A model generated the notes under the pieces. That model had not been told where the DNA came from. It searched no databases and was given only the letters and a program-made list of their open reading frames with translations. Below are positions 1,918 to 39,000 of a DNA stretch of 64,000 bases, piece by piece (position 1 is the stretch's first letter; each line of letters begins with the position of its first letter). The stretch covers positions 23,188,001-23,252,000 of the forward strand of contig CM106586.1 of NCBI GenBank assembly GCA_048013815.1, in the 5' to 3' direction. Source of the DNA: Setoptus koraiensis. Taxonomy: Eukaryota; Animalia; Arthropoda. The position numbers were made by a program, and so were the translations under genes.

Positions 1918-3330
1918 CTAAGCGGTGCTCTCTTTCTCATCATCGTGCTTGTTAGCTTTTTCGAGCGGGGGAGGTTCTACGAAATATGGCAAACGACCTC
2001 GTTGCCAATCGTTGAGTACCATCTTGGAAACTGTGTTAACATCAGGTTGACCACCTTTGAGTAGTTTTCCTGTTCTCCTGCCGATCATCTCTAAGAAGTG
2101 ATTCGCATCTGTCCATTCGTCAATCTTGTAATGCTTTAACAAAAAGTCTTTATCAACGCGTCTCAGAAGCTCCGGTATGTGAGATTCTGGTTCTTGAATG
2201 TTTTCTACTCTGACAACATTCTTCAATACGATATCAGTGTCGGTTTCATCGTGCGGGTGTACAACTCCTGGACAGTCTATAAGATATATACCTTTCATCA
2301 GAGATATATATTGCCAAACTTTGGTTTCACCGGCAATTGGTGCGACATCGCAGACTTTTTTGGATTTTAACGCGTTGATCAAAGAGCTTTTACCAACATT
2401 CGGATAACCAACAATACCAACGCTTATTTGTTTCTTGTCGTCATGGAGCCGTGCAAACTGCCTCAGTAGTCCAAACAAATCTGCCTTACCAAATGGATGA
2501 GTCATTGATGCTCTGAATGACAAAGTGGGGTACTCTTTGGACAATATGCCTACCCAATTTTTGGTTACTTGAACAGGAACTAGATCACATTTGTTTAGCA
2601 CTATGACCAGATGTTTGAAAGGCTTTTCCTTCTTGAGATAAGTCTCTAGATACGTAGACCTTGTTCCCATCGGATCTCTCACGTCTACAACTTGAATTAG
2701 CACATCGGACGAGTCGATAACTTTGAACAGTTCATTATATATTCTCTTAGATTGGCCAGCCTTCAAAAGAGGATCTCGCTTTTCATCTTTGAATTCCATT
2801 TCTCTCTTTTCCACTTGAGAGCCTAATTGGAAGTCATCCTCTTCGTTATATTTGGCTTGTTTTTGTTCGGCATCGTTGACAAGATCAGCATAATCATGCG
2901 CCTTGATATTTGGCCTTTTTCGTTTGGCCTTCTGGCCGAAAGTCTTATCGAAGGGCTGAGTTTCTAGTACGTGCATTCTAGAGTGTTTGGCACGTTCATT
3001 CAATAGTGTGACAGGCAGCTTAGTTGGCTTGAGAACGACCTGAGTGGGATCTTTGATAGTTTTTGTTAATTCTTCTTGAAACTTTTGCAAAGCATCCTGT
3101 GTGACAGTTCTTGTGTTACCGAACCACTTTTGGTTGGGTGCTATTCTGGCCACAGTGCCACTCTTATGATATGACTGATGTACTGCAGGCTTGATGATTT
3201 TTCCTTTAGAATTTCTAATGGGTTTGCCGCCTTTGTACATCATCAACCGTTTGATGGTGGCCTTGTCACGAAGGTTTGTTTCGCCCTTCTTCCTGGGCCG
3301 GTCGACATTTAGGCTGTGATTACTGGGCAT
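1918..3330 (-). CDS. GNL2: Nucleolar GTP-binding protein 2 (NOG2/GNL2), intronless, 470 aa
   Basis: N-terminal NGP1NT-type region ([26 protein letters not shown]); circularly permuted GTPase motifs G4 NKCD, G1 GYPNVGKS, G3 DCPG; C-terminal [11 protein letters not shown]. Confidence 0.95.
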
Positions 3331-4232
3331 CTTGGTTGTTACGATTCAAAATTAATTAATTAAATTATAATCTAACATATATTTGAATATTTATGTATGT
3401 ATGCATGCATACTTCATTAGTGTAAAATATTGGAGAAGGATATCAAAAATTTTCACTTTAGATTCGAATCTGGCATGACAGAATTAAAAAACCACGTTAC
3501 TTCATTTTCACGCATGCGCACTCAGACAGCGCCGGGATTCAAAAGTGAGAGGCCCGCGCTAGCTGAGGCTGCCATTGGCATTATTTTAACGGCAAATTAA
3601 TGAGGTCGGCTAATTGTGCCAGTAATCAACCGAATCGAACAGTCAAAAGTGAATCTCTTTTGTCGCAATACTTATTCTATTAATATGCATGGTCGCACAA
3701 ACGATCACAAATGATCCAACAAACGCCCTGGCCATTGAAACCTCATGAATCAATTTTGCTACTACCATTGTATTTATATTATTTCCTGGGCTAAGCTATT
3801 TTTGTTGTGGGTGAAGCTATTCAGCAACTCGCCTCCGACGTAAATATTTAATGGTATGAGTATGGGGCCAGTAGATGATAATTGGACCCTCAAGGCCAGT
3901 CGCCTGACGCGACTACAAAGAATTGATAAATTGCTGGACATTGAGGACACTAATGTGTTCTGCGCTGACCATTAATAGACAAAAATACTTCGGTTTCGAA
4001 TGCATAGACCTGCCGAGAATTGTTATCTTGTTCAGACTTTATTGACTTAGTCGAAAAGAAAGAAAGAGAAATTACATAATAATAGAGCTCGCTCGGTCGA
4101 CTTAAATAAATGGCCTCTGGCTCTCATTCTGTAGGTATGATCTAATGTTTGTGTGTGTGAGTGACATTCCGATGGCCACACAATAAACGAACAAACAAAT
4201 AAAATATCTCATCTATCATACAAGTGCTATTG

Positions 4233-22605: not shown

Positions 22606-24222
22606 ATGCTGGGCATTGTCACAAATATTCTAATTCCCCTATGCATTTCTAGCTTCGTTCAAACGGGTCCACTCGGACAATCAATTTTTTTCCCAAACTA
22701 CAAAATATCCGCAGCGACTGACACAAGTCACAACGGAGCAAGTACTTTCAATGCACTTGGCCGGCGTTTTAGTTATGCTAAGCAATTCCAATCTTTGAAT
22801 CTGAATCAGGATATACAGTTGACGAAACAAGAAAAAGAGGAGATACTAGTATGTATACAGATGATCCAAAAGCTGAATGGTTTTTTCTAACCACGCAAAT
22901 ATATGTAACCAATCGATTCGATTCGTTGATTAGTTGTGGCGATGCTAAGATTATCAATTTCCAATTTGATTTTCAAGAGATATTTGTTCAGGTATGGTTA
23001 CATAGGATACGTCAAAAGAGGCCACGATGAGGGTGTTTTCGTTAGCGCCAATGAAACAAATCAAGAACATTTATTGCAAGATGCTTTATTGTTGCTCGTG
23101 AGCATGTTTGGTGTTAAGAATGAGCCTTCGAAACGGAAAGGCCATGATTCCGATGAAGGAACCACCGTGAGTTTGTCAGATATCCTTAAATACTCTCGTC
23201 AACCTCGATGTTCCAATTCTGATCTACCCTACGATAGAATTATTGGTTCGGTTGGTTTGAAAACAACAAACAGCACATCCACGCCGTATTTCAATGTCGA
23301 GGCACCTTATCATTATAAAGGTTCTAGATATATCAATCATAATCAAACATGGCGTCTCATGTCTTCAAGTGATTCTTTAGAGTATAATCAAGCGCGCAAG
23401 ATTTTACATAGAGCTTTTTTAACTTGGGCCAAATACACTCCTTTGAATTTCGTTGAACTAACATCCACCCAACAAGGTCCTGTTCATCACGAGATATATT
23501 TTGTTGAGAGAAGACACTATATTAACTCATGGTTAAGGTATGAATGTGAAATAAGTTCAATGAATAACAGAGATGAAACGGCTCATGGTTATTTTCCTCT
23601 TTATGGAGGAACTCTACATATAAACAAGAATAGAATTTGGAAAGATCATTACGCTGGTAATTTTAAAGAGCGTAAGTTAACCAAACTCATTCACTTTAGT
23701 TGTTTAACCAATCGTAACAACTCTCTGTTAGCGCTCTTACGAGGATTATTCAACTATAAAAATTTTCGATTGGACAACTTCACTTTAACTCAAGTCAATC
23801 TCTGGCAGACTGCCACTCATGAGATTGGTCATATATTAGGCTTAGATCATTTACCGATTCAATTGTCGAAACAAGGACTGATGGTCATGCAAATTATGCA
23901 CCCACATTATCACGAAAGCATTGAAGTTGGAACATTAGGGGATTATGATGCTTTGGCAATTCAGAGGCTCTACGGCAGATACCCTGGTGGTAAAAAATCA
24001 TATGAGACAGAGGAAGGCGAGTCCTCTATTGATGAACATTCATTATTACCAATACCCGACGGGCATTCTTTGGGTAAAGGTTTGACCCGCAAAGTAGAAG
24101 AGGGAGCGACCGGACCGGATGTTTCAAAATTTAGATTGAACTATGATGTGCCATCTGATCTATCTGATTGGCTTATAGCCTTGGATAAAGTAAATCTAAA
24201 TGTTTGTAGCAAGACCGCGTAG
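22606..24222 (+). CDS. Secreted matrix metalloproteinase (M10), no hemopexin domain, ~475 aa
   Basis: Exons 22606-22848, 22978-23671, 23732-24222 (introns GTATGT..TCAAG 129 nt; GTAAGT..GTTAG 60 nt). Signal peptide, propeptide YLFRYGY, cysteine switch PRCSNSD, AHGYFP, zinc motif HEIGHILGLDH, Met-turn IMHPHY. Confidence 0.85.
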
Positions 24223-25068: not shown

Positions 25069-27702
25069 ATGGTTCTTCAACAGGTTTTTGATGATAAAAA
25101 ATTCACCGGGATTCGTCTGCCCACAACGTGCAGACCCATTACTTACTCGTTGACTTTGGAGCCGGATCTGAGAGCTTTCACCTTCAGAGGAGAGGTACGA
25201 ATCGATGTAGAAGTGACCAAAGAATTAGATCAGATCGTTTTAAACGCTGTCGATCTCAACTTCCAAAGCGCCTCTTATGTAGCCGATGGCGAAACATTCG
25301 AGGTCAGCCGTGTAATATTAAGCAAGCAAACCGAGACAGCTATTTTGACATTCGACATACCACTCAAGCCAGGCGTTGGCAAACTTAATATAATATTTGA
25401 TGGGACACTTAACGACAAAATGAATGGCTTTTATCGAAGTAAATACGTCGCCTGGAACGGTGAAGAAAGATATGCAGCCGTTACTCAATTCGAACCAACA
25501 GATGCAAGGCGTGCTTTTCCATGTTGGGACGAGCCGGCCTTCAAAGCTAAATTTAACATAGTTCTCGTTGTCGACGATCAACTTACTGCATTGTCAAACA
25601 TGTTTACTAGTCAAGAGCATACACAACCCAAAAGCGGTAAAAAAACAGTTACATTCGGCACAACTCCAATCATGTCAACTTACTTGGTTGCGTGTGTTGT
25701 AGGAGAGTTTGATCAACTCGAGGAGCTCTGCCAGAATAGAGCCATTCGAGTCTTCACACGTCCGGGCAAACAAGAGCTAGGACGTTTTGCTTTGGAAGTG
25801 GCTGTCAAATCTATTCTATATTACGAAGGATACTTTGGAGTGCCTTACCCATTGTCAAAATTGGATCTCGTTGCGATAGCGGATTTTAGCGCTGGTGCCA
25901 TGGAAAATTGGGGTCTAATCACATTCAGAGAAGCGCGCCTTCTCGTTGATCCGAACAACACATCTACTCAAACGAAACAGTCTGTAGCTTTGGTGGTTGC
26001 TCATGAAATCGCCCACCAGTGGTTTGGTAATCTGGTTACGATGGAATGGTGGACACATCTGTGGCTAAATGAAGGATTCGCATCTTTTATGGAATATTTA
26101 TGTGTAGACCACATATTTCCTCAGTATGATATCTGGTCTCAATTTGTTACAGATGAATACGCTAGAGCATTGGAGTTAGATGCGCTCCATAACAGTCATC
26201 CAATAGAAGTGCCTATCGACCACCCCTCGGAGATCGAAAGTATTTTCGATGATATCTCTTACAAAAAAGGATCGTCGGTAATAAGAATGCTGCATAACTA
26301 CATTTCGAATGAATGCTTTAGGTCTGGTATGAAAGACTACCTGACAAAGTTTGCATACAGTAATACTTCGACTGAACACTTGTGGGGCGCGTTGGAGGCT
26401 GCTAGCTCTAAGCCAGTCACCAAAGTGATGACTCAATGGACAAAGCAGATGGGCTTTCCATGGTTATCGGTGAACTGTAGAAACGAGGGTGTGTACACGG
26501 TTGTCAGAGTAAATCAAAGCAAATTCGCTTCTGATGGTAAAATCTCACCCGAAGAAAGCAAATTGACTTGGATGATACCGGTCGCAGTTAGCACGGGTGC
26601 TTCTCCCAGTGAGACAGCAAAAGAAGTTCTTTTGTGGGAGGCATGCGACGAAATCGCACTTGGAAATTTCGGCGACCACTGGATCAAGTTCAATCCAGGT
26701 ACCGTTGGACTGTATCGAACTTGCTATTCGAAACAAATGATCGACAAACTTTTGCCGGCGATATCCGCGAAAACTTTACCACCGTTAGACCGATTTGGTA
26801 TACTAAGCGACTATTTTGCTCTTTGTCAAGCTGGTACTGTTTCAACATTCGCACTGCTCGAATTACTAAGTGAGTTCTCCAGCGAGAATAATTACACAGT
26901 CTGGTCTTCGATCGACCGCTGTCTAAGCCGGCTCAATATACTGTTCTCCCATACTGATTTTCAGGATCTGTTCCATTGTTACGGTCGTGAATTATATTAT
27001 GGAATCTTTCATAGACTTACTTGGACGTCGTCTTCTCATGAAAAGCACACGGACGCTTTGTCTCGGGCCTTGGTCATTGGTCGTCTCGTTTCATTCGATG
27101 ATCAAAGAGTTATAACTGAAGCCAAAAAACGTTTCTTGGATCACGTCAGCGGGACCTCACTGATACCGGCTGACCTGAGGAGCGCAGTCTATAGGGCGGT
27201 TGCCGCTCACGGTGATGACGAAATGTTTGAATCCATCTTTAAAATTTATCGGCAGTCTGATCTCCAAGAGGAGAAAAATCGGGCTGCTACGGCCCTTGGC
27301 TATTCCAAGGATACAGCCCGCATAAAACGAGTAATTGAATTCGCCATGTCCGACGAAGTGAGGAATCAAGACAAGGTGTCCGTCCTCATATCTGTAGCGA
27401 TGACCACGAAAGGTCGTGATGCAGTTTGGGAACTTTTTACAAGCCGCACAGAAGATTTAAAAGAACGTTATGCTGGAGGATTTCTCATGAATCAACTGAT
27501 TAAATATTCAATTGAAAATTTCGCCAGCGAAGAAAAAGCTTTGGAAGTATTGAAATTCTTCACAGATAACAAATTCCCAGGATCAGAGCGAGTTATTCAG
27601 CAATCCGTTGAAACTATTCGCTTGAACGCGGATTGGCTCAGGAGAGACAGTGCTGCAACAAAGGCTTTCCTTTCTGATTTGCCACAAGTCTGTGATGAGT
27701 GA
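25069..27702 (+). CDS. NPEPPS: Puromycin-sensitive aminopeptidase (M1), intronless, 877 aa
   Basis: TQFEPTDARRAFPCWDEPAFKA, GAMENWGL, HEIAHQWFGN..x18..E, FDDISYKKG, ERAP1_C-type tail. Confidence 0.95.
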   Translation: MVLQQVFDDKKFTGIRLPTTCRPITYSLTLEPDLRAFTFRGEVRIDVEVTKELDQIVLNAVDLNFQSASYVADGETFEVSRVILSKQTETAILTFDIPLKPGVGKLNIIFDGTLNDKMNGFYRSKYVAWNGEERYAAVTQFEPTDARRAFPCWDEPAFKAKFNIVLVVDDQLTALSNMFTSQEHTQPKSGKKTVTFGTTPIMSTYLVACVVGEFDQLEELCQNRAIRVFTRPGKQELGRFALEVAVKSILYYEGYFGVPYPLSKLDLVAIADFSAGAMENWGLITFREARLLVDPNNTSTQTKQSVALVVAHEIAHQWFGNLVTMEWWTHLWLNEGFASFMEYLCVDHIFPQYDIWSQFVTDEYARALELDALHNSHPIEVPIDHPSEIESIFDDISYKKGSSVIRMLHNYISNECFRSGMKDYLTKFAYSNTSTEHLWGALEAASSKPVTKVMTQWTKQMGFPWLSVNCRNEGVYTVVRVNQSKFASDGKISPEESKLTWMIPVAVSTGASPSETAKEVLLWEACDEIALGNFGDHWIKFNPGTVGLYRTCYSKQMIDKLLPAISAKTLPPLDRFGILSDYFALCQAGTVSTFALLELLSEFSSENNYTVWSSIDRCLSRLNILFSHTDFQDLFHCYGRELYYGIFHRLTWTSSSHEKHTDALSRALVIGRLVSFDDQRVITEAKKRFLDHVSGTSLIPADLRSAVYRAVAAHGDDEMFESIFKIYRQSDLQEEKNRAATALGYSKDTARIKRVIEFAMSDEVRNQDKVSVLISVAMTTKGRDAVWELFTSRTEDLKERYAGGFLMNQLIKYSIENFASEEKALEVLKFFTDNKFPGSERVIQQSVETIRLNADWLRRDSAATKAFLSDLPQVCDE

Positions 27703-28729
27703 CTAGAATAGTGAATGAGACGTTGTTTGTATTTTACTATCAATTATTAGAATTCCTTCGCATGTGTCATCCACAACTCATTTGGCCACCTTTATTTGTG
27801 CTCGAGTCCATTTCTCTTGTGTAAATGCCCACAAAGCGACACAGGTCACTTACCACCCAGCATACCTATCTATTGGACCGAACAGATTAGTCTTGGTCCT
27901 GGGTGGAATTTCGAAGATGCGACACCTTTCCATTTGTTAAACTTTGATAGGGTTTTGCCTGACTTTTCCACGCACGAGTGCATAGATTGTGTGCGGCCCC
28001 TCTTGTATTTTAGAATTTCCGTAGAAATTTATTCTTCCTCTTTCTTCTGTCGGGCCGGCATTGTTACCGAAATTTGGCGAACGTGTTAGAGGGAGGCATG
28101 GTGGGAGACTTTGACTGAATAGGGAGAAATCGGGGGAAATGGGCGTGGCGGAGGGAGGTGCGTCGCACACACGTCCTGTGAATCAGCAATGATAAAACAT
28201 GACGCTCGTCCCGGCCCGATCCTTGCAAGTTGTTACAAATGCTTGTTTATTGTTGTCCGTAAGTCATGGCCGTTTTGTCCAACCAGCCACTATAATTTTA
28301 TGAGCGAGACACATTAGCCAGATCAATCTATTGAAATAACTGATCAATTTATGCTATTGACACTCGACTGGGCAAATTTGATATTTTTTATGGAGTCATA
28401 TTAACAATACTAGAAAATAGAAGGCAATTATTGGTCACACTAAAATTCCATCACTAAAATATTTGTAGTTGCAGTGCATTGAGCCAGAAATCATCCACAT
28501 TAACATATTAATCTGTTGTCATTAGTTGTGATTTTGTTATACCCCTACACACACTCATATTAACTCATGCTTGTCGATGTAATCAAATAAATACACAACA
28601 ATCATTCAATGGCACATCAACTTGGACACCACTAAACAGTTCACTCATTTGCCTCGGATGAAATATTTTTCAAAAGAAGAACACTTCTGGATCTTTTGTT
28701 GTCCCAGCGGCAATTTTTATTCCTCACTA
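27641..28729 (+). repeat. Direct repeat copy 1 (1089 bp): last 62 nt of NPEPPS CDS plus intergenic region up to the CYP start
   Basis: Matches 30329-31418 on visual comparison except tttGgcga vs tttACgcga (~28076) and cactAaaat vs cactGaaat (~28456). Confidence 0.95.
28432..28442 (+). promoter_or_regulatory. TGGTCACACTA, exact match to Drosophila core-promoter Motif 1 (YGGTCACACTR)
   Basis: Exact 11-mer ~290 bp upstream of the CYP ATG; function in this taxon is not established. Confidence 0.4.
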
Positions 28730-30255
28730 TGACATCCTTGCAGCTAGTATCCTCAGGCAGAATATTGGACATTACAAGAAGATGCCAACAGGTGGTCAAG
28801 CTTCACTCGGGCAATCTCTTAAGATGCGAAGATATACCAAAACCTAGAGGAATACCTATGATCGAGCTTATTAAAGAAGGTGGACCTGGTTATCTGCATC
28901 GTCATATTGATACGCAACATGTATTGTTGGGTCCTATATTCAGACAAAGCTTGGGCACAACTGAACTTATCTTTGTCGCGGATGCAGATATCTTCGAGCA
29001 AGTAACCCGTTACGAAGGTAAATATCCTCATCACAATGTACCACCAGCATGGGAGTTATATAATGAAATAAAAAATGTACAGCGCGGCTTATTTTTCATG
29101 CGTGGTCAAGAATGGGGCGAAACTCGTCGATTTATGAATAAAGTCTTCCTTGAACCACAAAACTTTGAACGTAGGATTCGCACACGTATACATCTTTTTA
29201 ATGACGCTATCGATGATTTATTTGCCAGATGGAATAGGCACCAAAGAGAGGATGGATCAATTTTGATTGAAGATCTGAAGAACGATCTAAATAGATGGTC
29301 AATAGAGTCTACAGGTATAATACTTTTTGATCGAAGATTAGATTGCCTCAATGACGCTAATAAGGAGTCTTTAGAACTAGTTCGTAGCGTAAATGGTGTG
29401 TTCGAAACTACTTCAACATTCCAAATTGTTCCACCAAAGCTTGCTTGGGCATTAGGATTGGGCGTTTGGAAGAAGTTCGACCGTCATATGTCCAGGTCAA
29501 TTGAATTGGCCAGCTTCTATGTAGACCGATGCACATCTCATATCACAAAGAAAGGACAATCGAAAGCATACAAAGCCTCCGGAGAACATCTGGATTCCAC
29601 GAGCATTGCAGAAGATATGATTCTACATATGAATGAGAAACAGGTCGTCCAATCTATCGTTGATTTAATCTTGGCTGCAACTGATACCACAGCAAATGCA
29701 GTACAATGGGTTTTGTATCTTTTAAGTAAAAATACCTCTCATCAAGAGAGCATTTTCTCTGAGTCAAAAACAATCACACGGGACCGCTCACTGGATCATA
29801 AGTCCTATACTGAAGCGTGTATTAAGGAAACCTTACGCTTGTATCCGATCGCTCCTTTTATCGCTAGGACTCTGGATTGTGATATAAATTTGTACAACTA
29901 CAAACTTCCCGCAGGTAAAACGATTATATATTCTCTATTCACTACAAGTCGTGATGAAAAATATTTCAGCAAAGCTCAAGAGTTTTTTCCAGAGAGATGG
30001 CTCCGTTCCTCATCTGATCCAACTATATCATGTCCAATGACTAGAAATAGATACGCGAGTTTACCTTTTGGAAAAGGAGTAAGAGCGTGCATTGGTAGGC
30101 GGATGGCGGAGTTACAAATGCGACTCCTAATATCTAGAATAGTAACAAATTTCAAGATTGAGCCGGTGATAGATGATAACATTGAGATAAAGTTGCGCAT
30201 GGTCACAACTCCTGAGAGAAGAATTGACTTGAGATTGATCCCAAGACAAATGTAG
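28729..30255 (+). CDS. sad: Mitochondrial-clan cytochrome P450 CYP315A1 (shadow, ecdysteroid C2-hydroxylase), intronless, 508 aa
   Basis: WELYNEIKNVQRGLFFMRGQEW resembles the shadow signature; IPKPRGIP hinge, I-helix LAATDTT, K-helix ETLR, PERW, heme PFGKGVRACIG. First ATG at 28729 (ORF track uses an upstream TTG). Confidence 0.88.
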   Translation: MTSLQLVSSGRILDITRRCQQVVKLHSGNLLRCEDIPKPRGIPMIELIKEGGPGYLHRHIDTQHVLLGPIFRQSLGTTELIFVADADIFEQVTRYEGKYPHHNVPPAWELYNEIKNVQRGLFFMRGQEWGETRRFMNKVFLEPQNFERRIRTRIHLFNDAIDDLFARWNRHQREDGSILIEDLKNDLNRWSIESTGIILFDRRLDCLNDANKESLELVRSVNGVFETTSTFQIVPPKLAWALGLGVWKKFDRHMSRSIELASFYVDRCTSHITKKGQSKAYKASGEHLDSTSIAEDMILHMNEKQVVQSIVDLILAATDTTANAVQWVLYLLSKNTSHQESIFSESKTITRDRSLDHKSYTEACIKETLRLYPIAPFIARTLDCDINLYNYKLPAGKTIIYSLFTTSRDEKYFSKAQEFFPERWLRSSSDPTISCPMTRNRYASLPFGKGVRACIGRRMAELQMRLLISRIVTNFKIEPVIDDNIEIKLRMVTTPERRIDLRLIPRQM

Positions 30256-30328
30256 AACGAATTGCCACGTGGTTCCACGGATGACTCCTAGACCGACTTC
30301 AAAAAGAGCTTATAATCTTCTATGTTCT

Positions 30329-31418
30329 GGAGAGACAGTGCTGCAACAAAGGCTTTCCTTTCTGATTTGCCACAAGTCTGTGATGAGTGACTAGAATAGT
30401 GAATGAGACGTTGTTTGTATTTTACTATCAATTATTAGAATTCCTTCGCATGTGTCATCCACAACTCATTTGGCCACCTTTATTTGTGCTCGAGTCCATT
30501 TCTCTTGTGTAAATGCCCACAAAGCGACACAGGTCACTTACCACCCAGCATACCTATCTATTGGACCGAACAGATTAGTCTTGGTCCTGGGTGGAATTTC
30601 GAAGATGCGACACCTTTCCATTTGTTAAACTTTGATAGGGTTTTGCCTGACTTTTCCACGCACGAGTGCATAGATTGTGTGCGGCCCCTCTTGTATTTTA
30701 GAATTTCCGTAGAAATTTATTCTTCCTCTTTCTTCTGTCGGGCCGGCATTGTTACCGAAATTTACGCGAACGTGTTAGAGGGAGGCATGGTGGGAGACTT
30801 TGACTGAATAGGGAGAAATCGGGGGAAATGGGCGTGGCGGAGGGAGGTGCGTCGCACACACGTCCTGTGAATCAGCAATGATAAAACATGACGCTCGTCC
30901 CGGCCCGATCCTTGCAAGTTGTTACAAATGCTTGTTTATTGTTGTCCGTAAGTCATGGCCGTTTTGTCCAACCAGCCACTATAATTTTATGAGCGAGACA
31001 CATTAGCCAGATCAATCTATTGAAATAACTGATCAATTTATGCTATTGACACTCGACTGGGCAAATTTGATATTTTTTATGGAGTCATATTAACAATACT
31101 AGAAAATAGAAGGCAATTATTGGTCACACTAAAATTCCATCACTGAAATATTTGTAGTTGCAGTGCATTGAGCCAGAAATCATCCACATTAACATATTAA
31201 TCTGTTGTCATTAGTTGTGATTTTGTTATACCCCTACACACACTCATATTAACTCATGCTTGTCGATGTAATCAAATAAATACACAACAATCATTCAATG
31301 GCACATCAACTTGGACACCACTAAACAGTTCACTCATTTGCCTCGGATGAAATATTTTTCAAAAGAAGAACACTTCTGGATCTTTTGTTGTCCCAGCGGC
31401 AATTTTTATTCCTCACTA
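30329..31418 (+). repeat. Direct repeat copy 2 (1090 bp), including an orphan copy of the NPEPPS C-terminal codons
   Basis: Starts ggagagacagtgctgcaac (RRDSAATKAFLSDLPQVCDE*), ends cctcacta; offset 2688/2689 from copy 1. Confidence 0.95.
31121..31131 (+). promoter_or_regulatory. Second TGGTCACACTA (Motif 1-like), within repeat copy 2
   Basis: Exact 11-mer ~400 bp upstream of the LRR gene ATG. Confidence 0.4.
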
Positions 31419-31526
31419 ATCAATATCCATCTCTTTGAATGTTCTATCAACCCATTCCGAGATTTACATGTGATTCCTAATATATCCGTCAGTAGAAGCT
31501 ATAGGAACTATTGACAATCTTACATT

Positions 31527-33437
31527 ATGAATTCTTCACATCGCTCAAGCATGACTCGGAAAGCCAGCAGTACATCCGAGGATTATTCAAACATCTATCT
31601 CAAAACGACAACAATCAGTATCATATGCATGCTCATTATAAGCTGCATTGTAAATACCGTCGGTGCTCTCTGCCCCAAACGCTGCTCCTGTGATGAAATA
31701 CAACTAGAGTTTACATGCCATGAATCGATTGGGTTGCAGGGCGTGCCCATCACATTGAATCCACAGACGAGGCGGATATTTATCAAGAATAACAACCTAA
31801 CCACATTTCACAATATAGAGATATATAGAGATTTAGAGGGTCTAGATCTGTCGCATAATAGTATTAATCAGTTGAACCTCGAGAAGCTTGAAACGAATAC
31901 TCATTTGCAATTTTTCAATGCTAGTCATAACAGCATCTCAGAAATAGTAGACACTGGTGTCAAAAGCTCGGAGCCTCAGCTTATGAAGGAAGAATACAAT
32001 ATTCCTGTATTACCCACAAAGAGGCTCGATATACGCACATTATTATTAGATCACAACTCTATAAGAGCAATCAACAACTTCTTCTTCCACAGGCTGCCAA
32101 ACATCAATCATTTAGATTTATCCTACAATAAGATTCACAACATTGAGCAATTCGCATTTATTGGAGTACGTAATCTTGAAAAACTGATTCTCAAAGGGAA
32201 TAGAATAACTCAAATTCCAACACTACCTATGTCGTATCTAGGTTACGATGTAACTCCCGCCGGTTTCTCTAGACTACAGCCCGTAAATCTTGAAATCCTA
32301 GATCTCAGCTATAATCTCATATCGATGATACGGACTGATAGTTTACAATCACTGCAAACTCTCCGAGAGCTTTATCTTGAATCATGTGGAATCAACTATA
32401 TTGAGGATGGTGCCTTTGAGGGATTGACGAGTTTGCTAGTATTGTACTTGGACAGGAACCAGCTTGACGCTGTCCCCTTAAAATCTCTCTCTCACCTAAC
32501 ACAGCTGAGAATTCTTCGACTGAGCCAAAATAAATTCACTGAGATACCACCGTTTGCCTTCTCTAATCTAGCGAACTTGGAGAGTCTACAACTAAATAAT
32601 CAATCTTTAATTACCATATCTAAGGACTCATTCTTAGGACTAAACAACCTCAAGCGACTAGAAATTTCCTCAAATAAGGATTTGTCCAATATTGATCAAG
32701 GATCATTTACCAATTTATCACATCTTGTCTATCTCAATCTTAATGCGAATGCCCTGTCTGGACTGACTGGAGACTTCATCAATTCGACAAACCTCAGGCT
32801 GCTTGATATGAGAAATAATCCGCTCAACTGTTTCTGCAATATAAAGTGGTTGGGTCATTGGTTGCGTTTGTTTGATAACAGAACAATTGAATATCAGAGC
32901 AAGTCATATCATCATCCAACATATTCACTCACAGATGAGGAAATCGAATATGCAACATGGCTCAATGACTCAGTTTTGACTCGTGACCTTGTTGACCTGA
33001 AATGCGCCAAACCAGCTGCATTAGCTGGCCAACTACTGATTGATTTACATTTAGATAAATTGGATTGTTTGGAACCAACTTCCGAGCTACATGTACAGAT
33101 AGGAATCGGCTCTCTACTGTTCATACTAATACTACTGGTAGTTGTATGCTCCATCGGGTTTTGCCTGAGGGCAAAAGATTTTTTACTTGTTGTAAAAGAT
33201 AACATATTGCATCGTCAATCCAGTCATTCGAGCGTCCCACCATTTGAACTGGACAAACCCAAAATTTTCGACAACAATAGTTCAACATTGTTTTCAATTA
33301 ATACAGATGCTCACAATATGTATGACACAAATCTATCATATGGCGAGGTCAATGAGTATAGTTCTGCGATCTACGATGAGAGGCACTACCAAGAACCCGA
33401 TCAAATTGTTTCCGGCCGGACCTATACAGATTTGTAG
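31527..33437 (+). CDS. Type I LRR transmembrane protein (tartan/capricious-like architecture), intronless, 636 aa
   Basis: Hydrophobic signal, LRRNT CPKRCSC, more than 12 LxxLxLxxN repeats, LRRCT NPLNCFCNIKWL..CAKP..LDC, TM IGIGSLLFILILLVVVCSIGFCL, Tyr-containing tail. Confidence 0.88.
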   Translation: MNSSHRSSMTRKASSTSEDYSNIYLKTTTISIICMLIISCIVNTVGALCPKRCSCDEIQLEFTCHESIGLQGVPITLNPQTRRIFIKNNNLTTFHNIEIYRDLEGLDLSHNSINQLNLEKLETNTHLQFFNASHNSISEIVDTGVKSSEPQLMKEEYNIPVLPTKRLDIRTLLLDHNSIRAINNFFFHRLPNINHLDLSYNKIHNIEQFAFIGVRNLEKLILKGNRITQIPTLPMSYLGYDVTPAGFSRLQPVNLEILDLSYNLISMIRTDSLQSLQTLRELYLESCGINYIEDGAFEGLTSLLVLYLDRNQLDAVPLKSLSHLTQLRILRLSQNKFTEIPPFAFSNLANLESLQLNNQSLITISKDSFLGLNNLKRLEISSNKDLSNIDQGSFTNLSHLVYLNLNANALSGLTGDFINSTNLRLLDMRNNPLNCFCNIKWLGHWLRLFDNRTIEYQSKSYHHPTYSLTDEEIEYATWLNDSVLTRDLVDLKCAKPAALAGQLLIDLHLDKLDCLEPTSELHVQIGIGSLLFILILLVVVCSIGFCLRAKDFLLVVKDNILHRQSSHSSVPPFELDKPKIFDNNSSTLFSINTDAHNMYDTNLSYGEVNEYSSAIYDERHYQEPDQIVSGRTYTDL

Positions 33438-34989: not shown

Positions 34990-36084
34990 TCACGATTCCA
35001 CCGATGTCAGCGATGTGATACTATTTTTCACACTTGTCATTGTCACTATAAGAGATCCTAAAGTGGACTTGAGTGCTGGCAATATGTGCAGGCCTTCTGT
35101 GTCTAGTTCATGTCGTTGATTGGTTTCGATCAACTCTAGACTTGTCTCTAGTATAGCAAGTCTAGATTCAACGAGTTCATAAATATAATATACATGTTCC
35201 CTGAGATTTTGCCTACATCTTTTCCAGTCTATTGATCCCAGATCAACTTTACTGCGAGTTTTGTCATCAAGCCAAGAATATTGCCACAATTTCAATTCCG
35301 GATCTTTTCGCTCAACTGTGAGCAGGCTGACCTTTGCTTGAATGCTGTGAATAACTCTTTGAATCTCTTTAGCTTCGTTTGAGATCTCAGAAACTTTATG
35401 CACTGGTTGTTTGAGGACAGTGTCATAATCATATTGTTGTATGTGCGAGAAGGAATCATGGTTATCTCCAATATTATTATTGTTATTGTTACTAATATTG
35501 TTGATATTATTTCCATCAATTGGAGCCAGCGATTCTGATTCACTCGCATCAATTTTTTGCTCAATAGAGCAATTTTGAGCCGAGTGATTGTATTTGGTGG
35601 GACAGAGAAACTTGTACCATGATATTGGTTGCACAAGTGACTTTCTAACCATTTTGTTCGGATATGAACAATAAGCGCATTTGTAATTATTAGGTACATC
35701 CTCCTCTCTACCGACATTGATACAATGTAGATGTTGCCATGTCAGACATGATTCACATTCTACAAACGTTCCAATGTCTTGATTGATGCCACATGGGCAC
35801 CTTATGTCACCACTTTTGTAGTTGTTGTGATCATCTTCTAGTTCGTCCTGTTTGTTTTTCTTCTCTTCTTTCTTTTGTTGTTTATCCTGTGGGCTACCCC
35901 CCTCGACGACATGTTCAGATTTGTTGCTCGCCGATGATGACGACGATTTGCGACGCTTTGGTGAGGTGCCAGAAGAGACGAGAGGTGGGCAGGAGCGTTT
36001 CTTTAACTTTGGCAATTTCACTATCAGGTATTCTCTTGGTGAAGAGAGTGAATTCTTTTTTGATTTAATGGCGGTATTCAACAT
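34990..36084 (-). CDS. PHD-finger protein resembling the C-terminal part of PHF20/MBD-R2, 364 aa from first ATG
   Basis: PHD C4HC3: IRCPCG..FVECESCLTWQHLHC..VPNNYKCAYC; PHF20-like tail DPELKLWQYSW and CRQNLREHV..RLAILE. Frame is open to ~36280 without ATG, so an upstream exon is possible. Confidence 0.7.
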   Translation of the reverse strand: MLNTAIKSKKNSLSSPREYLIVKLPKLKKRSCPPLVSSGTSPKRRKSSSSSASNKSEHVVEGGSPQDKQQKKEEKKNKQDELEDDHNNYKSGDIRCPCGINQDIGTFVECESCLTWQHLHCINVGREEDVPNNYKCAYCSYPNKMVRKSLVQPISWYKFLCPTKYNHSAQNCSIEQKIDASESESLAPIDGNNINNISNNNNNNIGDNHDSFSHIQQYDYDTVLKQPVHKVSEISNEAKEIQRVIHSIQAKVSLLTVERKDPELKLWQYSWLDDKTRSKVDLGSIDWKRCRQNLREHVYYIYELVESRLAILETSLELIETNQRHELDTEGLHILPALKSTLGSLIVTMTSVKNSITSLTSVES

Positions 36085-39000
36085 CTGTGTGAGTGTCTCT
36101 ATTTTTTGTTGCCAATAAATCAACAATGAAACACTTTGTGCTCCTGGGTCAAAGATCGAATTTACAACTAGAATTAACAGCTCGATTGCTAGGTTGCTAT
36201 GTGCCTCAACCGATATGTTTGTGTGTGTCCAATGTGTTCTATAAATAGTAATAAAATGATGATGATAAAGTCGCTAATAATAAATAATAATCATCTTGCC
36301 TATTTAATGGTCGTGGTAGTGGGTTGTTGTTGGTGGAAGCCGGCCAAGTTGATGATCATGCTACCGTGTACCTAATGAATGGTCATGGCACGAATATCGT
36401 ACATAGTAAACAGTGGAGAAAGAGAACAACGCTAGCTGGTTGGACCGCATTGTGCCACCTGTATATGAGTGAGTATGTGTGTGTAGATGGCGCCAAATTT
36501 GAAAAGCATTTTTTCGAATTTTATAAACAATCCTAAACAATTGTTATCGGTTGACAGAGGCGCCAGAACAGGTGCAATTATCTCATTAGGCCATGGTCGA
36601 TGGGCCTGATTATTGTTAATTAAAATTCATTAATTGAAGCACGTCACTGGCACGTAGAGGGCGGCAGTGTTGAGTGTGTCCAAGATATTGCAGACCCACA
36701 GCGAGAGGGAATAAGGAGTTCTCTGTGGTCTTTTTTATTTGTTCGCAGATCAATTCAGTCTTGTCAGCCAAATCGAAAAACGCCAAATCAAATTGAGGCA
36801 AATCAAGTGAAGTCACAGCACAGTCATGTATATCGCCGTGGCTGTATAGCCGAAAACAAATTGAATTGAATCAAATTTGTTTTCGGCAAGTGCAAGGGCA
36901 ATAAATGGCGGCGGCGCCGCTACAACTTGCAAAAAGACTTGCTGGTCTGCTGCAAGAAACATGGAGACATGGCAAACAGAAAGAAAGAGACAGGCAGAGC
37001 GACAGTCAGATAGACAGAGAGATCTTGACTAACAATCTTTTCTCTCTCTCTTTATTTGCGCTTCTTTCGACTTTTCTTAATATAATTAGATGATGTTCTG
37101 AACTTGTGTGCATGTCTGCTGACGATGATAGAAGAAGTATCAATAATAAAAGCATATATAAAGAAGGATAAAATGAATTAATTGACGATGGGCATGGGCT
37201 TCGGTATCAACATCAACCTGAGCATTAGTGTATAAGTATAAAAATCAAGTATCAGAATCAGTATCATTATCAGTATTAGTATCATCGTCAGCAGCGCCAG
37301 CACAATCAGTACTAGTGAGAGAGAGAGAGAGCTGGGGAGTACAACTGCATATCATCGACACAATCTAAGTAGACGTATCATAATAATAATCTGGTCGTAT
37401 CATCACTATGGGCAATTGATTGGGACGATGATGATGATTTTAAAAAATACACCTGTGAGTGTGTGTGTGTCAGTTTTTGCTGTCAGTCACCTAACAGGTA
37501 CAACGACAGCGATAGCGATCATCGTCGTCATAGTCATCATCATCATCATCAGCAGTGAGCATTAGAAGATCACTAGGCAATCAAACAGGTGACTTTGACC
37601 ACTCATCGTCATGATCGATTGTTGAGTGGCCAGTAAGTAATTAGCGCAAATCTGCTCGCAAATCGCACTCACCTGTCTGTCTAAATAAAGAATATACACT
37701 TTGCGGCTTCTTTAATCTACACGATTTCAAGATTCTATCTAGAGATAATCAATTAACGTCGCTAATCTATGGTCTATCTGAGCAGCTTATACCTTGGCTC
37801 TATCATTATACCCTTACAATGACGCTGTTTCTTCTACCGTCGATACCGTAGCTAGAGCTACTTTAGGTAAACGAGGCATCAATTGACGAAGATTAGCTGT
37901 TTGGCAGCGGCCACAGTTTTTCTTTCTTCTCTAGATGATCTCTTCTGATCTCTTGATTTTTGTTGTCTTGTGTTGTCTTTTGTTGCTAATCTTGTGTTGC
38001 CTGTCGATTGAACCACACATTCGTTCGGGCTGACAGCCGATCAAACGGCTCTAAATAGTATTGGTCAGCGCAAATTTTGTTGTTTGATTCTACCCGAAAT
38101 CAGTGCTGTTGCCTAGGACGACCATAATGGTAAATTGCTCAATCGATTGGAATCAATCGCCTCATTAGGACTTAATTGCGGCCTTTGCCAAAGCTATTCG
38201 TCATGACCATTTGTCTTGGGCCGTCATTGTCGTGTGTGCGTGTTGAAACAACAGCAACAACACCAACGGCTATGTTGAATGTTGTTGTTTGTCTCTGTAA
38301 TGTTTGTATCTGTTCTGATTTCAAACTAACAACTTTGATCTGCTGTTAATGGTCGGTCGCAAATTATAGAGAGCGTGCAATCGGCCGATAATTTTAGCCT
38401 GCTGATAACTTTCATTACACACACACATAGATAGAGAGAGAATGCCTAAACAGTAATAACAATTAAACAATAAAAACAAATTGTTTTGCGCGTCACTTTG
38501 AGCGCTCGTTGTTGTTGCTCGTGCAACAAGACAAATGAGAGCGCCCCCGTTTCTATCATTTTCGGCCTGCTTCGTTCTATCACAATAGATTTGATGCGTT
38601 GATGGTGGTCTGAATAACAAATTAGTTGATTGTTTGTCCGCAATTTGGACTGTTAATTCGATAGCCCATCGTTCAGATATCCGATATACCACCAAACAAG
38701 CGGTGGTGCCCACCCTTGTTGTTGTCTGGCTGTCGTCGCGTTGTTGCCTTGCACGCTTTAGCGGCCAAATAACTGTATATGTGGATACGCCAATCTGGGC
38801 GCAATGACCGGCCAGAGAAACAGCATCGATCTAGCCGGATTTCCTCGGACAACATTGGTTTTTTGGGCCCAAGAAGCCCATCTCTAGCCTGGACCTGATG
38901 CATGCAAGCACGCGCTGAAAGTAGCTGTTCAATGTGAGCGGCTTAAAGGAGTTTCTGGTGACACAATAGCAGGCAACAACTAATTAGTTACGATGCTTTC

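Follow-up and report, generated by a model that had tools for sequence, protein, structure and literature searches.

Introduction

How did an intact gene for the P450 CYP315A1 (shadow) come to stand between two nearly identical kilobase-long direct repeats in the genome of the mite Setoptus koraiensis? We addressed this question in a 64-kb stretch of genomic DNA, referred to here as the window. The evidence assembled below indicates that one very recent germline copy-and-paste event probably made the R1-shadow copy-R2 arrangement by templated insertion. In form, the structure is a one-step "cycle of templated insertion", also describable as a FoSTeS/MMBIR-type insertion whose insertion site was duplicated. 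Neither a promoter module nor a circular intermediate nor a transposon is its source.

A single repeat pair between two intact genes

Self-BLAST and MAFFT alignment found one direct repeat pair only in the whole 64 kb, R1 and R2 (Table 1). The 1.09-kb length and the two differences of the original prediction were confirmed: at 28076 R1 has G and R2 has AC, and at 28456 R1 has A and R2 has G. Just upstream of the repeat start, past a single mismatch at 27640/30328, two more bases match (27638-39 and 30326-27), and identity drops to random immediately outside the repeat limits. The predicted landmarks were equally correct: the first 62 nt of R1 are the last 62 nt of the aminopeptidase coding sequence, and its final base is the A of the P450 start codon (28729), while R2 follows the P450 stop (30255) at a distance of 73 nt and the LRR ATG (31527) follows R2 after 108 nt. 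No N characters or gaps were found in the window, R gave no Rfam match in a scan of 24-34 kb of the window, and the ORFs inside R, including one of 97 aa, had no Pfam match. R is present in exactly two copies in the 48.76-Mb genome. An LTR retrotransposon or other mobile element was rejected on these grounds, as R is not a multi-copy family, begins within host coding sequence and encloses a host P450.

Table 1. Features of the R1-shadow-R2 structure and its flanks (window coordinates).
Feature	Position	Strand	Remarks
Puromycin-sensitive aminopeptidase (NPEPPS-type M1 peptidase), intronless, 877 aa	25069..27702	+	Pfam and PDB match
R1, first copy of duplicated target	27641..28729	+	Aminopeptidase 3' end and most of the aminopeptidase-LRR intergenic region
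Motif-1-like TGGTCACACTA	28432..28442 (twin 31121-31131)	+	Judged a chance match
Insert (probable templated insertion), 1,600 bp	28728..30327	+	Inverted copy of G000:C2:19,689,997-19,691,596; 3 mismatches: 29792, 29805, 30225
CYP315A1 (shadow), intact ORF, younger copy, 508 aa	28729..30255	+	Pfam p450, named matches, reciprocal best hit
mTERF passenger fragment, last 12 codons and stop	30288..30327	-	Translation identical to donor mTERF end, NIEDYKLFLKSV plus stop
Orphan T at right junction	30328	+	Differs from donor (G) and from R1 (A at 27640)
R2, second copy of duplicated target	30329..31418	+	Includes detached last 62 nt of aminopeptidase CDS
Unique, non-duplicated 108 bp, R2 to LRR ATG	31419..31526	+	Two upstream ATGs (31439, 31468)
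Transmembrane LRR protein gene, intronless, single-pass, 636 aa	31527..33437	+	Pfam LRR_8

The three gene identities proposed earlier (NPEPPS, CYP315A1, LRR) also hold, with Pfam hits to M1 peptidase, p450 and LRR_8. The aminopeptidase has the M1 architecture (Peptidase_M1_N, Peptidase_M1, ERAP1_C) and is nearest to puromycin-sensitive aminopeptidase (E 1e-276 in PDB, against 1e-135 for aminopeptidase N) rather than APN or ERAP. The LRR protein consists of a signal/anchor, a cysteine-capped LRR block, a transmembrane segment at about residues 525-545 (by hydropathy) and a short tail, and its PDB matches are the ectodomains of LGR4/5, LRIG1 and LINGO. An exact look-up of the aminopeptidase, P450 and LRR proteins returned no identical entry in the protein collection, the best match of the P450 being 79 % identical.

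The enclosed gene is an extra copy of shadow

The window P450 matches PF00067 (E 4e-79, residues 38-500), its heme-loop motif FGKGVRACIG is intact and its ETLR helix-K motif aligns with relatives. Its best named matches are CYP315A1 of Tetranychus urticae (40 %), of a spider and of beetles, with CYP24/CYP27 behind. In the reciprocal search, T. urticae CYP315A1 found two shadow copies best in the genome (E about 1e-106; 4e-106 for the window copy), the next paralogue following at 5e-40. This reciprocal relation identifies the window P450, at the level of sequence, as a CYP315A1 ortholog, for which a role as ecdysteroid C2-hydroxylase, acting on 2-deoxyecdysone in mitochondria, is predicted from orthology. 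Shadow is usually single-copy in arthropods (PMC13449613). The window gene, called simply shadow in the original prediction, is an extra copy, since a second one lies at C2:19.69 Mb.

This second locus, on the same chromosome at a distance of 3.5 Mb, is the donor of the insert. Insert and donor are 99.8 % identical and no match extends outside the insert limits, which lie 1 nt before the shadow ATG and 72 nt past the stop. The donor shadow ORF is intact and intronless, as are its neighbours intact, namely a gene for an RNA-polymerase zinc-ribbon subunit and an mTERF-domain gene (Pfam mTERF hit). The latter lies tail-to-tail with shadow at the donor, whereas the mTERF fragment in the window has no gene attached. 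The window copy differs from the donor by one non-synonymous and two synonymous changes; the former is Pro355Leu, where the window copy has Leu and both the donor and a 79 %-identical relative (P0001) have Pro.

At both junctions the limits of the insert and the inner edges of the repeats agree within 0-2 nt. The left junction shows a 2-nt microhomology, TA (28728-28729), and the right junction another, TC (30326-30327), plus the orphan base; no long homology is present. Thus, the insert copies a distant locus whose original remains intact, and a host segment is directly repeated on both sides of it with edges that are the insert ends. Copying from donor to window is established because the recipient carries the scar, a duplicated target whose ends are those of the insert, and also by the antisense stub of the donor's mTERF neighbour within the insert and the derived Leu355 of the window copy. 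R1 and R2 differ at 2 sites in 1,089 nt and the shadow pair at 3 in 1,598 (0.18-0.19 %), counts that may have been skewed if near-identical copies were polished with short reads. This equal divergence, together with the sharp edges of both pairs, argues for a single event. As regards chance, 2-nt microhomologies are weakly above it, and a 5' limit exactly at an ATG is rare for a random breakpoint.

According to this, DNA synthesis in the aminopeptidase-LRR intergenic region would have halted 108 bp short of the LRR ATG. This synthesis may have been replication, at a fork that had stalled or broken, or the repair of a double-strand break. It would then have switched through the TA microhomology to the shadow locus, copied 1.6 kb there and returned through the TC microhomology with one miscopied base. 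Re-entry 1.09 kb behind the departure point would have led to R being copied twice, giving R1, the shadow copy and R2. Simple end-joining capture of a shadow fragment may be an alternative enzymology for the same insertion, and we infer template switching over it only provisionally, as replication template switching and end-joining capture of a copied fragment leave the same sequence.

The repeats are not a copied shadow promoter

The original prediction had regarded R as a terminator-plus-promoter module and had proposed, as one option, that the shadow promoter was copied in front of the LRR gene. The latter is rejected, because the parental shadow has an unrelated upstream region, 281 bp long and common to the divergent zinc-ribbon RNA-polymerase-subunit gene. 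The exact Motif 1-like TGGTCACACTA does occur once per copy of R; its use as promoter evidence finds no support, as YGGTCACACTR is not enriched genome-wide (129 sites vs 216 for the reversed control pattern), and an Ohler Motif-1 core promoter at R was discarded on this count. The module itself is unproven: no canonical poly(A) signal was found near the aminopeptidase stop, and the LRR core promoter may sit outside R, in the non-duplicated 108 bp, where a TATA-like TAATATAT lies at about 31478, some 45 nt upstream of the LRR ATG. The other option, entry of an intronless P450 with a kilobase-scale target duplication, is borne out by the donor and by insert ends that meet those of R1 and R2. The circular intermediate (Campbell-type integration) suggested for it is not, as the donor holds no R sequence.

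The same architecture recurs in the genome

Confirmed cases comprise three among about 30 P450 loci and one AMP-binding gene. A CYP302A1-like copy (C1:20,505,744-20,508,135) lies between 414-bp repeats of 98.8 % identity, its donor being on C2 (96.4 %); it is 5'-truncated, has a broken reading frame and shows a 6-nt junction microhomology. A second P450 case (C2:9,797,903-9,800,701) lies between 589-bp repeats (98.3 %), with a donor 6.8 Mb away (97.4 %), and is kept under purifying selection (dN/dS 0.07). The AMP-binding gene stands between 460-bp repeats. Junctions of these sibling events are CA, GGGACT and a single T. In the other two P450 inserts the breakpoints fall 200 nt within the CDS, about 150 nt ahead of it or 11 nt before its end. 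The ATG-precise limit in the window is therefore taken as chance, and it was rejected as a signature of RNA or of a gene cassette. A fixed insert length, suggested by the three P450 inserts (1,598, about 1,594 and about 1,646 bp), was also dropped, since the AMP-binding insert measures 3.7 kb. The 386-aa ORFs beside two of the donors are unrelated (mTERF vs ankyrin/MYND). TBK1 has only one locus in the genome at E below 1e-30.

Alternative explanations

The near-identity of both pairs, R1/R2 and the shadow copies, raises the concern that chimeric reads or mis-resolved repeats produced a structure that exists on no real chromosome, the more so if the genome is the published Setoptus koraiensis assembly, for which over 100,000 wild mites were pooled (heterozygosity 1.13 %) and sequenced with noisy PacBio CLR reads. 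However, both junctions are novel joins that reads must contain and that haplotype switches cannot give, the window is gap-free, and the shadow copies differ at 3 sites and the repeats at 2. Furthermore, the published library was a 30-kb one at about 496x, made without whole-genome amplification; single reads should therefore span the 3.9-kb structure. The recurrence of the architecture at two older P450 genes, which with 2.6-3.6 % divergence, one decayed frame and one case of purifying selection cannot be artefacts, makes an assembly error highly improbable here. Hence, of the two options left by the original prediction, "very recent" stands and "assembly effect" is unlikely. Another reading would be an old insertion that looks young because gene conversion keeps both the repeats and the two shadow genes alike. 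The older P450 cases suggest that repeats lying close together do convert to some extent: their divergence is 1.2 % and 1.7 %, against 3.6 % and 2.6 % between insert and donor. In the window, by contrast, identity stays even up to each of the four edges and ends there sharply, leaving no decayed margins, repeat pair and gene pair share the same low divergence, and conversion would need exact coverage of the whole tract over 3.5 Mb in inverted orientation. We consider this reading very unlikely.

In size the copy resembles a transcript and, like processed retrogenes, it is dispersed, intronless, gene-sized and devoid of the parental promoter, as expected if reverse transcription of a shadow mRNA had supplied DNA that entered at a widely staggered break. 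Intron loss is unusable as a test of this, the donor being intronless. The 3' junction lacks a poly(A) tract (no A-run at 30320-30330), the 72-nt tail contains no AATAAA, and the target duplication is 1,089 bp rather than about 5-20 bp, some 100 times the usual length. Moreover, transcription would have to begin 1 nt ahead of the ATG, which is implausible, and the sibling cuts 200 nt inside the CDS and 11 nt before its end misfit 3'-anchored reverse transcription, so that retroposition deserves little credence. The reverse direction, with the window as the ancestral home of shadow and the 19.69 Mb copy as the derived one, has no specific support and is barely credible: the copy ends would match the ends of an unrelated R1/R2 duplication by chance, the mTERF C-terminus would have to stem from inserted DNA, and it is the window copy that carries the derived Leu355. 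Templated insertion is thus the preferred reading.

Relation to known systems

Both the kind of event and the type of scar are already well known. In cycles of templated insertion, described by Li et al. 2020 among PCAWG structural variants (PMC7025897), a distant segment is inserted and the host segment is replicated again, which leaves the donor intact and gives exactly the R1-insert-R2 geometry of the window. Those events are somatic, occur in human tumours and usually measure tens of kilobases to megabases, whereas the event described here is germline, took place in a mite, and combines a 1.6-kb template with a 1.09-kb host duplication and a complete extra gene. For the PLP1 family, one of the complex insertions of the human germline, Gu et al. 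2016 (PMC5120786) proposed by FoSTeS/MMBIR that the fork leaves chr19, copies the whole of PLP1 on chrX and returns to a more proximal chr19 point, duplicating the insertion site, with 1-3 bp microhomology. The duplication there is 182 kb, while the window shows a single pair of template switches and no further complexity, a simplicity with which end-joining capture would also be compatible. In C. elegans helq-1 and brc-1 mutants, tandem duplications arise when strand-annealing repair is aborted and polymerase theta does the joining (PMC8654963). They are spontaneous and 0.1-10 kb long (median about 1 kb), and their junctions show microhomology and, in some cases, templated insertions. The mite target duplications (0.41, 0.46, 0.59 and 1.09 kb) fall within this range; insertions at the worm junctions are short and of local origin, in contrast to the 1.6-kb copy of a distant locus in the mite.

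In this regard, a lineage-wide signature is a possible, if doubtful, extension: microhomology-joined kilobase target duplications, often with a distant gene-sized copy, may be a main route of gene duplication and relocation in this streamlined eriophyoid genome, as a germline equivalent of the C. elegans helq-1 signature, and may reflect loss of the annealing helicase HELQ with polymerase theta (POLQ) kept. No HELQ-type gene was found in the genome, where the only Hel308-family locus is POLQ itself. A link between HELQ loss and the mite duplications is no more than a hypothesis.

Consequences for the locus and the genome

The insertion was probably close to neutral. Because the target was duplicated, both neighbours retain full flanks: the aminopeptidase still has its 3' end, and 1.2 kb of the DNA upstream of the LRR gene is preserved; a landing-site duplication of this kind spares neighbouring genes. 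The new shadow copy is intact and lacks any upstream DNA of its own, so its expression would hinge on what R supplies. It is plausible, by ordinary NAHR logic, that R1 and R2 could drive its loss or amplification.

A complete extra copy of shadow has thus been newly born, and it is now preceded by the upstream region of a receptor-like gene to which it is unrelated. It offers a clean natural start for following whether the duplicate of an essential hormone gene is silenced, lost through the repeats or rewired. Together with its older siblings, the event points to how a compact, almost intron-free genome gains and moves genes by copy-and-paste at the DNA level, and the purifying selection on one older copy indicates that the process yields working genes.

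Structure and origin of the shadow copy

The original prediction placed shadow (CYP315A1) between near-identical direct repeats, and this arrangement is real: self-comparison of the whole window, together with base-by-base alignment, recovered a single repeat pair (R1 and R2, copies of the repeated sequence R; see table). The predicted distances of 62, 73 and 108 nt (R1 start to aminopeptidase CDS end, P450 stop to R2, and R2 to the LRR ATG) and the end of R1 on the A of the P450 ATG were all correct when checked against sequence and ORFs. The two repeats differ internally at two sites (28076, G versus AC; 28456, A versus G); just ahead of them lie two further shared bases (TC) and then one mismatched position. 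Outside the repeat limits their likeness vanishes entirely. The window contains no N gaps, and a genome-wide search of the 48.76-Mb, two-contig assembly found exactly two copies of R.

Every gene model consisted of one uninterrupted ORF and spliced models were unnecessary. Matrixin-type (Peptidase_M10) and PHD-finger ORFs flanking these genes are also uninterrupted, in keeping with an intron-poor genome. With Tetranychus urticae CYP315A1 as query, the window P450 was the top match in the genome (E 4e-106 versus 5e-40), and alignment showed its heme loop to be intact.

A protein search of the genome found a second, essentially identical shadow ORF on the opposite strand, 3.5 Mb away. At the DNA level the two loci align over 1,600 bp, differ by three transitions, at 29792, 29805 and 30225, and show no match beyond these limits; the segment enclosed by R1 and R2 was therefore, to the base, copied from a different locus. 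The parental locus is very tightly spaced (stretch L014, 3997-6200 = G000:C2:19689997-19692200): shadow shares 281 bp with a divergent TFIIS-type zinc-ribbon RNA-polymerase-subunit gene and lies tail-to-tail with an mTERF-domain gene, the convergent stops being 33 nt apart. Translation comparison revealed the final 12 codons of this mTERF gene, stop included, antisense in the window copy, where they are a passenger without function.

Coordinates of the features discussed (bare positions refer to the window, G000:C2:23,188,001-23,252,000; C1 and C2 are the two contigs of the genome, G000; L-numbers are extracted stretches with their own local coordinates)
Feature	Position	Remarks
Matrixin-type ORF	22936-24222 (+)	
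Aminopeptidase ORF	25069-27702	M1 peptidase; top solved relative puromycin-sensitive aminopeptidase (E 1e-276 versus 1e-135 for aminopeptidase N)
R1	27641-28729	
Shadow copy ORF (P450)	28729-30255	closest named relatives CYP315A1 of T. urticae, spider and beetles
Copied tract	28728-30327	= C2:19,691,596-19,689,997
R2	30329-31418	
LRR gene ORF	31527-33437	single-pass transmembrane LRR protein
PHD-finger ORF	34990-36126 (-)	
Parental shadow ORF	C2:19,690,072-19,691,595	
CYP302A1/disembodied-like (Halloween-type) copy	C1:20,505,744-20,508,135	in L007 = G000:C1:20505361-20508981; repeats 384-795, 2362-2775; insert 794-2387
CYP302A1-like donor	L006 1234-2833 = G000:C2:21619088-21620687	other chromosome than copy
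Third P450 copy	C2:9,797,903-9,800,701	in L012 = G000:C2:9797365-9801543; repeats 539-1124, 2749-3337; insert ~1125-2749
Third P450 donor	L011 ~1104-2749 = G000:C2:3008132-3009777	
AMP-binding gene	C1:7.578-7.582 Mb	repeats C1:7577725-7578184 and 7582057-7582516, in L041 = G000:C1:7574001-7584000
POLQ	G000:C1:19991017-19996301 (L019, L020, L022)	helicase and polymerase parts
POLQ helicase ORF	C1:19,991,017-19,993,728	

Direction and age of the copying

The window locus is the recipient, because it carries the scar of the event in the form of a duplicated target, because the copied tract begins and ends within 0-2 nt of where R1 stops and R2 starts, because the mTERF stub belongs to the donor locus, and because Pro355Leu, the sole amino-acid difference between the shadow copies, is derived in the window copy when a 79 %-identical relative is taken as reference. 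The first of the original scenarios, entry of the P450 with a target duplication, holds, with its donor locus identified, while the circular intermediate suggested for it is unsupported. There are 2 differing sites in 1,089 nt between the repeats and 3 in 1,598 nt between the genes (one non-synonymous and two synonymous). This equal divergence (~0.18-0.19 %), together with sharp edges throughout, fits an origin of R1-shadow-R2 in one recent event. The published Setoptus koraiensis assembly (two chromosomes, N50 24.53 Mb) was built from a pool of over 100,000 wild mites, whose heterozygosity was 1.13 % (PMC11920263). Since the shadow copies and R are less diverged than alleles in the pooled mites, the insertion may still be polymorphic.

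Content of the repeat

R comprises the aminopeptidase 3' end and the intergenic region minus its last 108 bp. It had been proposed to be a terminator-plus-promoter module, but nothing shows R to be such a unit, and AATAAA is absent within 880 nt of the aminopeptidase stop. The Motif-1 match put forward as promoter evidence lends no support either, as it was not enriched genome-wide (129 sites versus 216 control sites). The window shadow copy retains no parental upstream DNA. In addition, upstream ATGs occur twice in the unduplicated 108 bp, where a TATA-like element also lies ~45 nt ahead of the LRR start codon; this suggests that LRR transcription may start outside R. Target duplication keeps both neighbours structurally intact, and this may be why such insertions survive.

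Other loci with the same architecture

The shadow copy belongs to a recurrent pattern in the S. koraiensis genome. Repeats of 414 bp (98.8 %) flank a CYP302A1-like copy, which reproduces 1.6 kb of an intact C2 gene in inverted orientation (96.4 %); that gene has 37 % identity to a beetle CYP302A1. The opening 200 nt of the CDS are missing from the copy, its frames are broken, and its junction overlaps are CA and GGGACT (6-nt microhomology). A third P450 copy, between 589-bp repeats (98.3 %), matches a gene 6.8 Mb away at 97.4 % (2.6 % diverged), the copied tract running from ~150 nt upstream of the CDS to 11 nt short of its end. Its frame is open (498 aa) and its dN/dS is 0.07; such events have therefore yielded a retained, apparently functional gene. 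Furthermore, 460-bp direct repeats (98.9 %) enclose a ~3.7-kb gene of the AMP-binding (acyl-CoA-synthetase-like) type; this locus also has an additional, displaced 141-bp match. An assembly artefact cannot account for the older, diverged cases. In the older P450 cases breakpoints fall independently of where genes start and end, so the exact fit of the shadow copy's left junction to the ATG is read as chance. The three P450 inserts are nearly equal in length (1,598, ~1,594 and ~1,646 bp of donor) and differ in their offsets relative to the CDS; the near-equal lengths may reflect ascertainment through the P450 query.

Junctions and mechanism

The mechanism behind the shadow copy is of a known kind. 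At the left junction R and donor have TA in common, at the right junction TC followed by one orphan T, and the junction alignment showed neither a poly(A) tract nor long homology. The geometry of R1-shadow-R2 is that of the "cycle of templated insertion" of Li et al., in which the string goes back to the host and a host segment is replicated again (PMC7025897). For the same geometry in a human PLP1 insertion, the explanation of Gu et al. is a fork that leaves the host, copies a gene and returns more proximally, so that the insertion site is duplicated (PMC5120786). In the window, such a cycle would have copied shadow at the donor, rejoined the host and replicated the host segment a second time. 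Alternatively, repair synthesis could have proceeded from both break ends, with end joining then taking in a captured copy, a route that yields the very same sequence as template switching.

Mutants of C. elegans helq-1 accumulate kilobase tandem duplications with junctions of that type (PMC8654963). In S. koraiensis, the genome search (assembly BUSCO completeness 89 %) detected no HELQ gene or separate HELQ/Hel308-type helicase, and we regard HELQ absence as a lead, not a finding. The only Hel308-family locus found was POLQ, whose helicase ORF matches the human Pol theta helicase (E 9e-195) and is followed 1.4 kb downstream, on the same strand, by a family-A polymerase domain; the next matches to the POLQ-helicase query were Sec63-type helicases only (ASCC3/Brr2-like).

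With its donor locus named, the first scenario is now exact. The shadow copy is a neat, very young example of a known mechanism, affecting a hormone gene that is normally single-copy.
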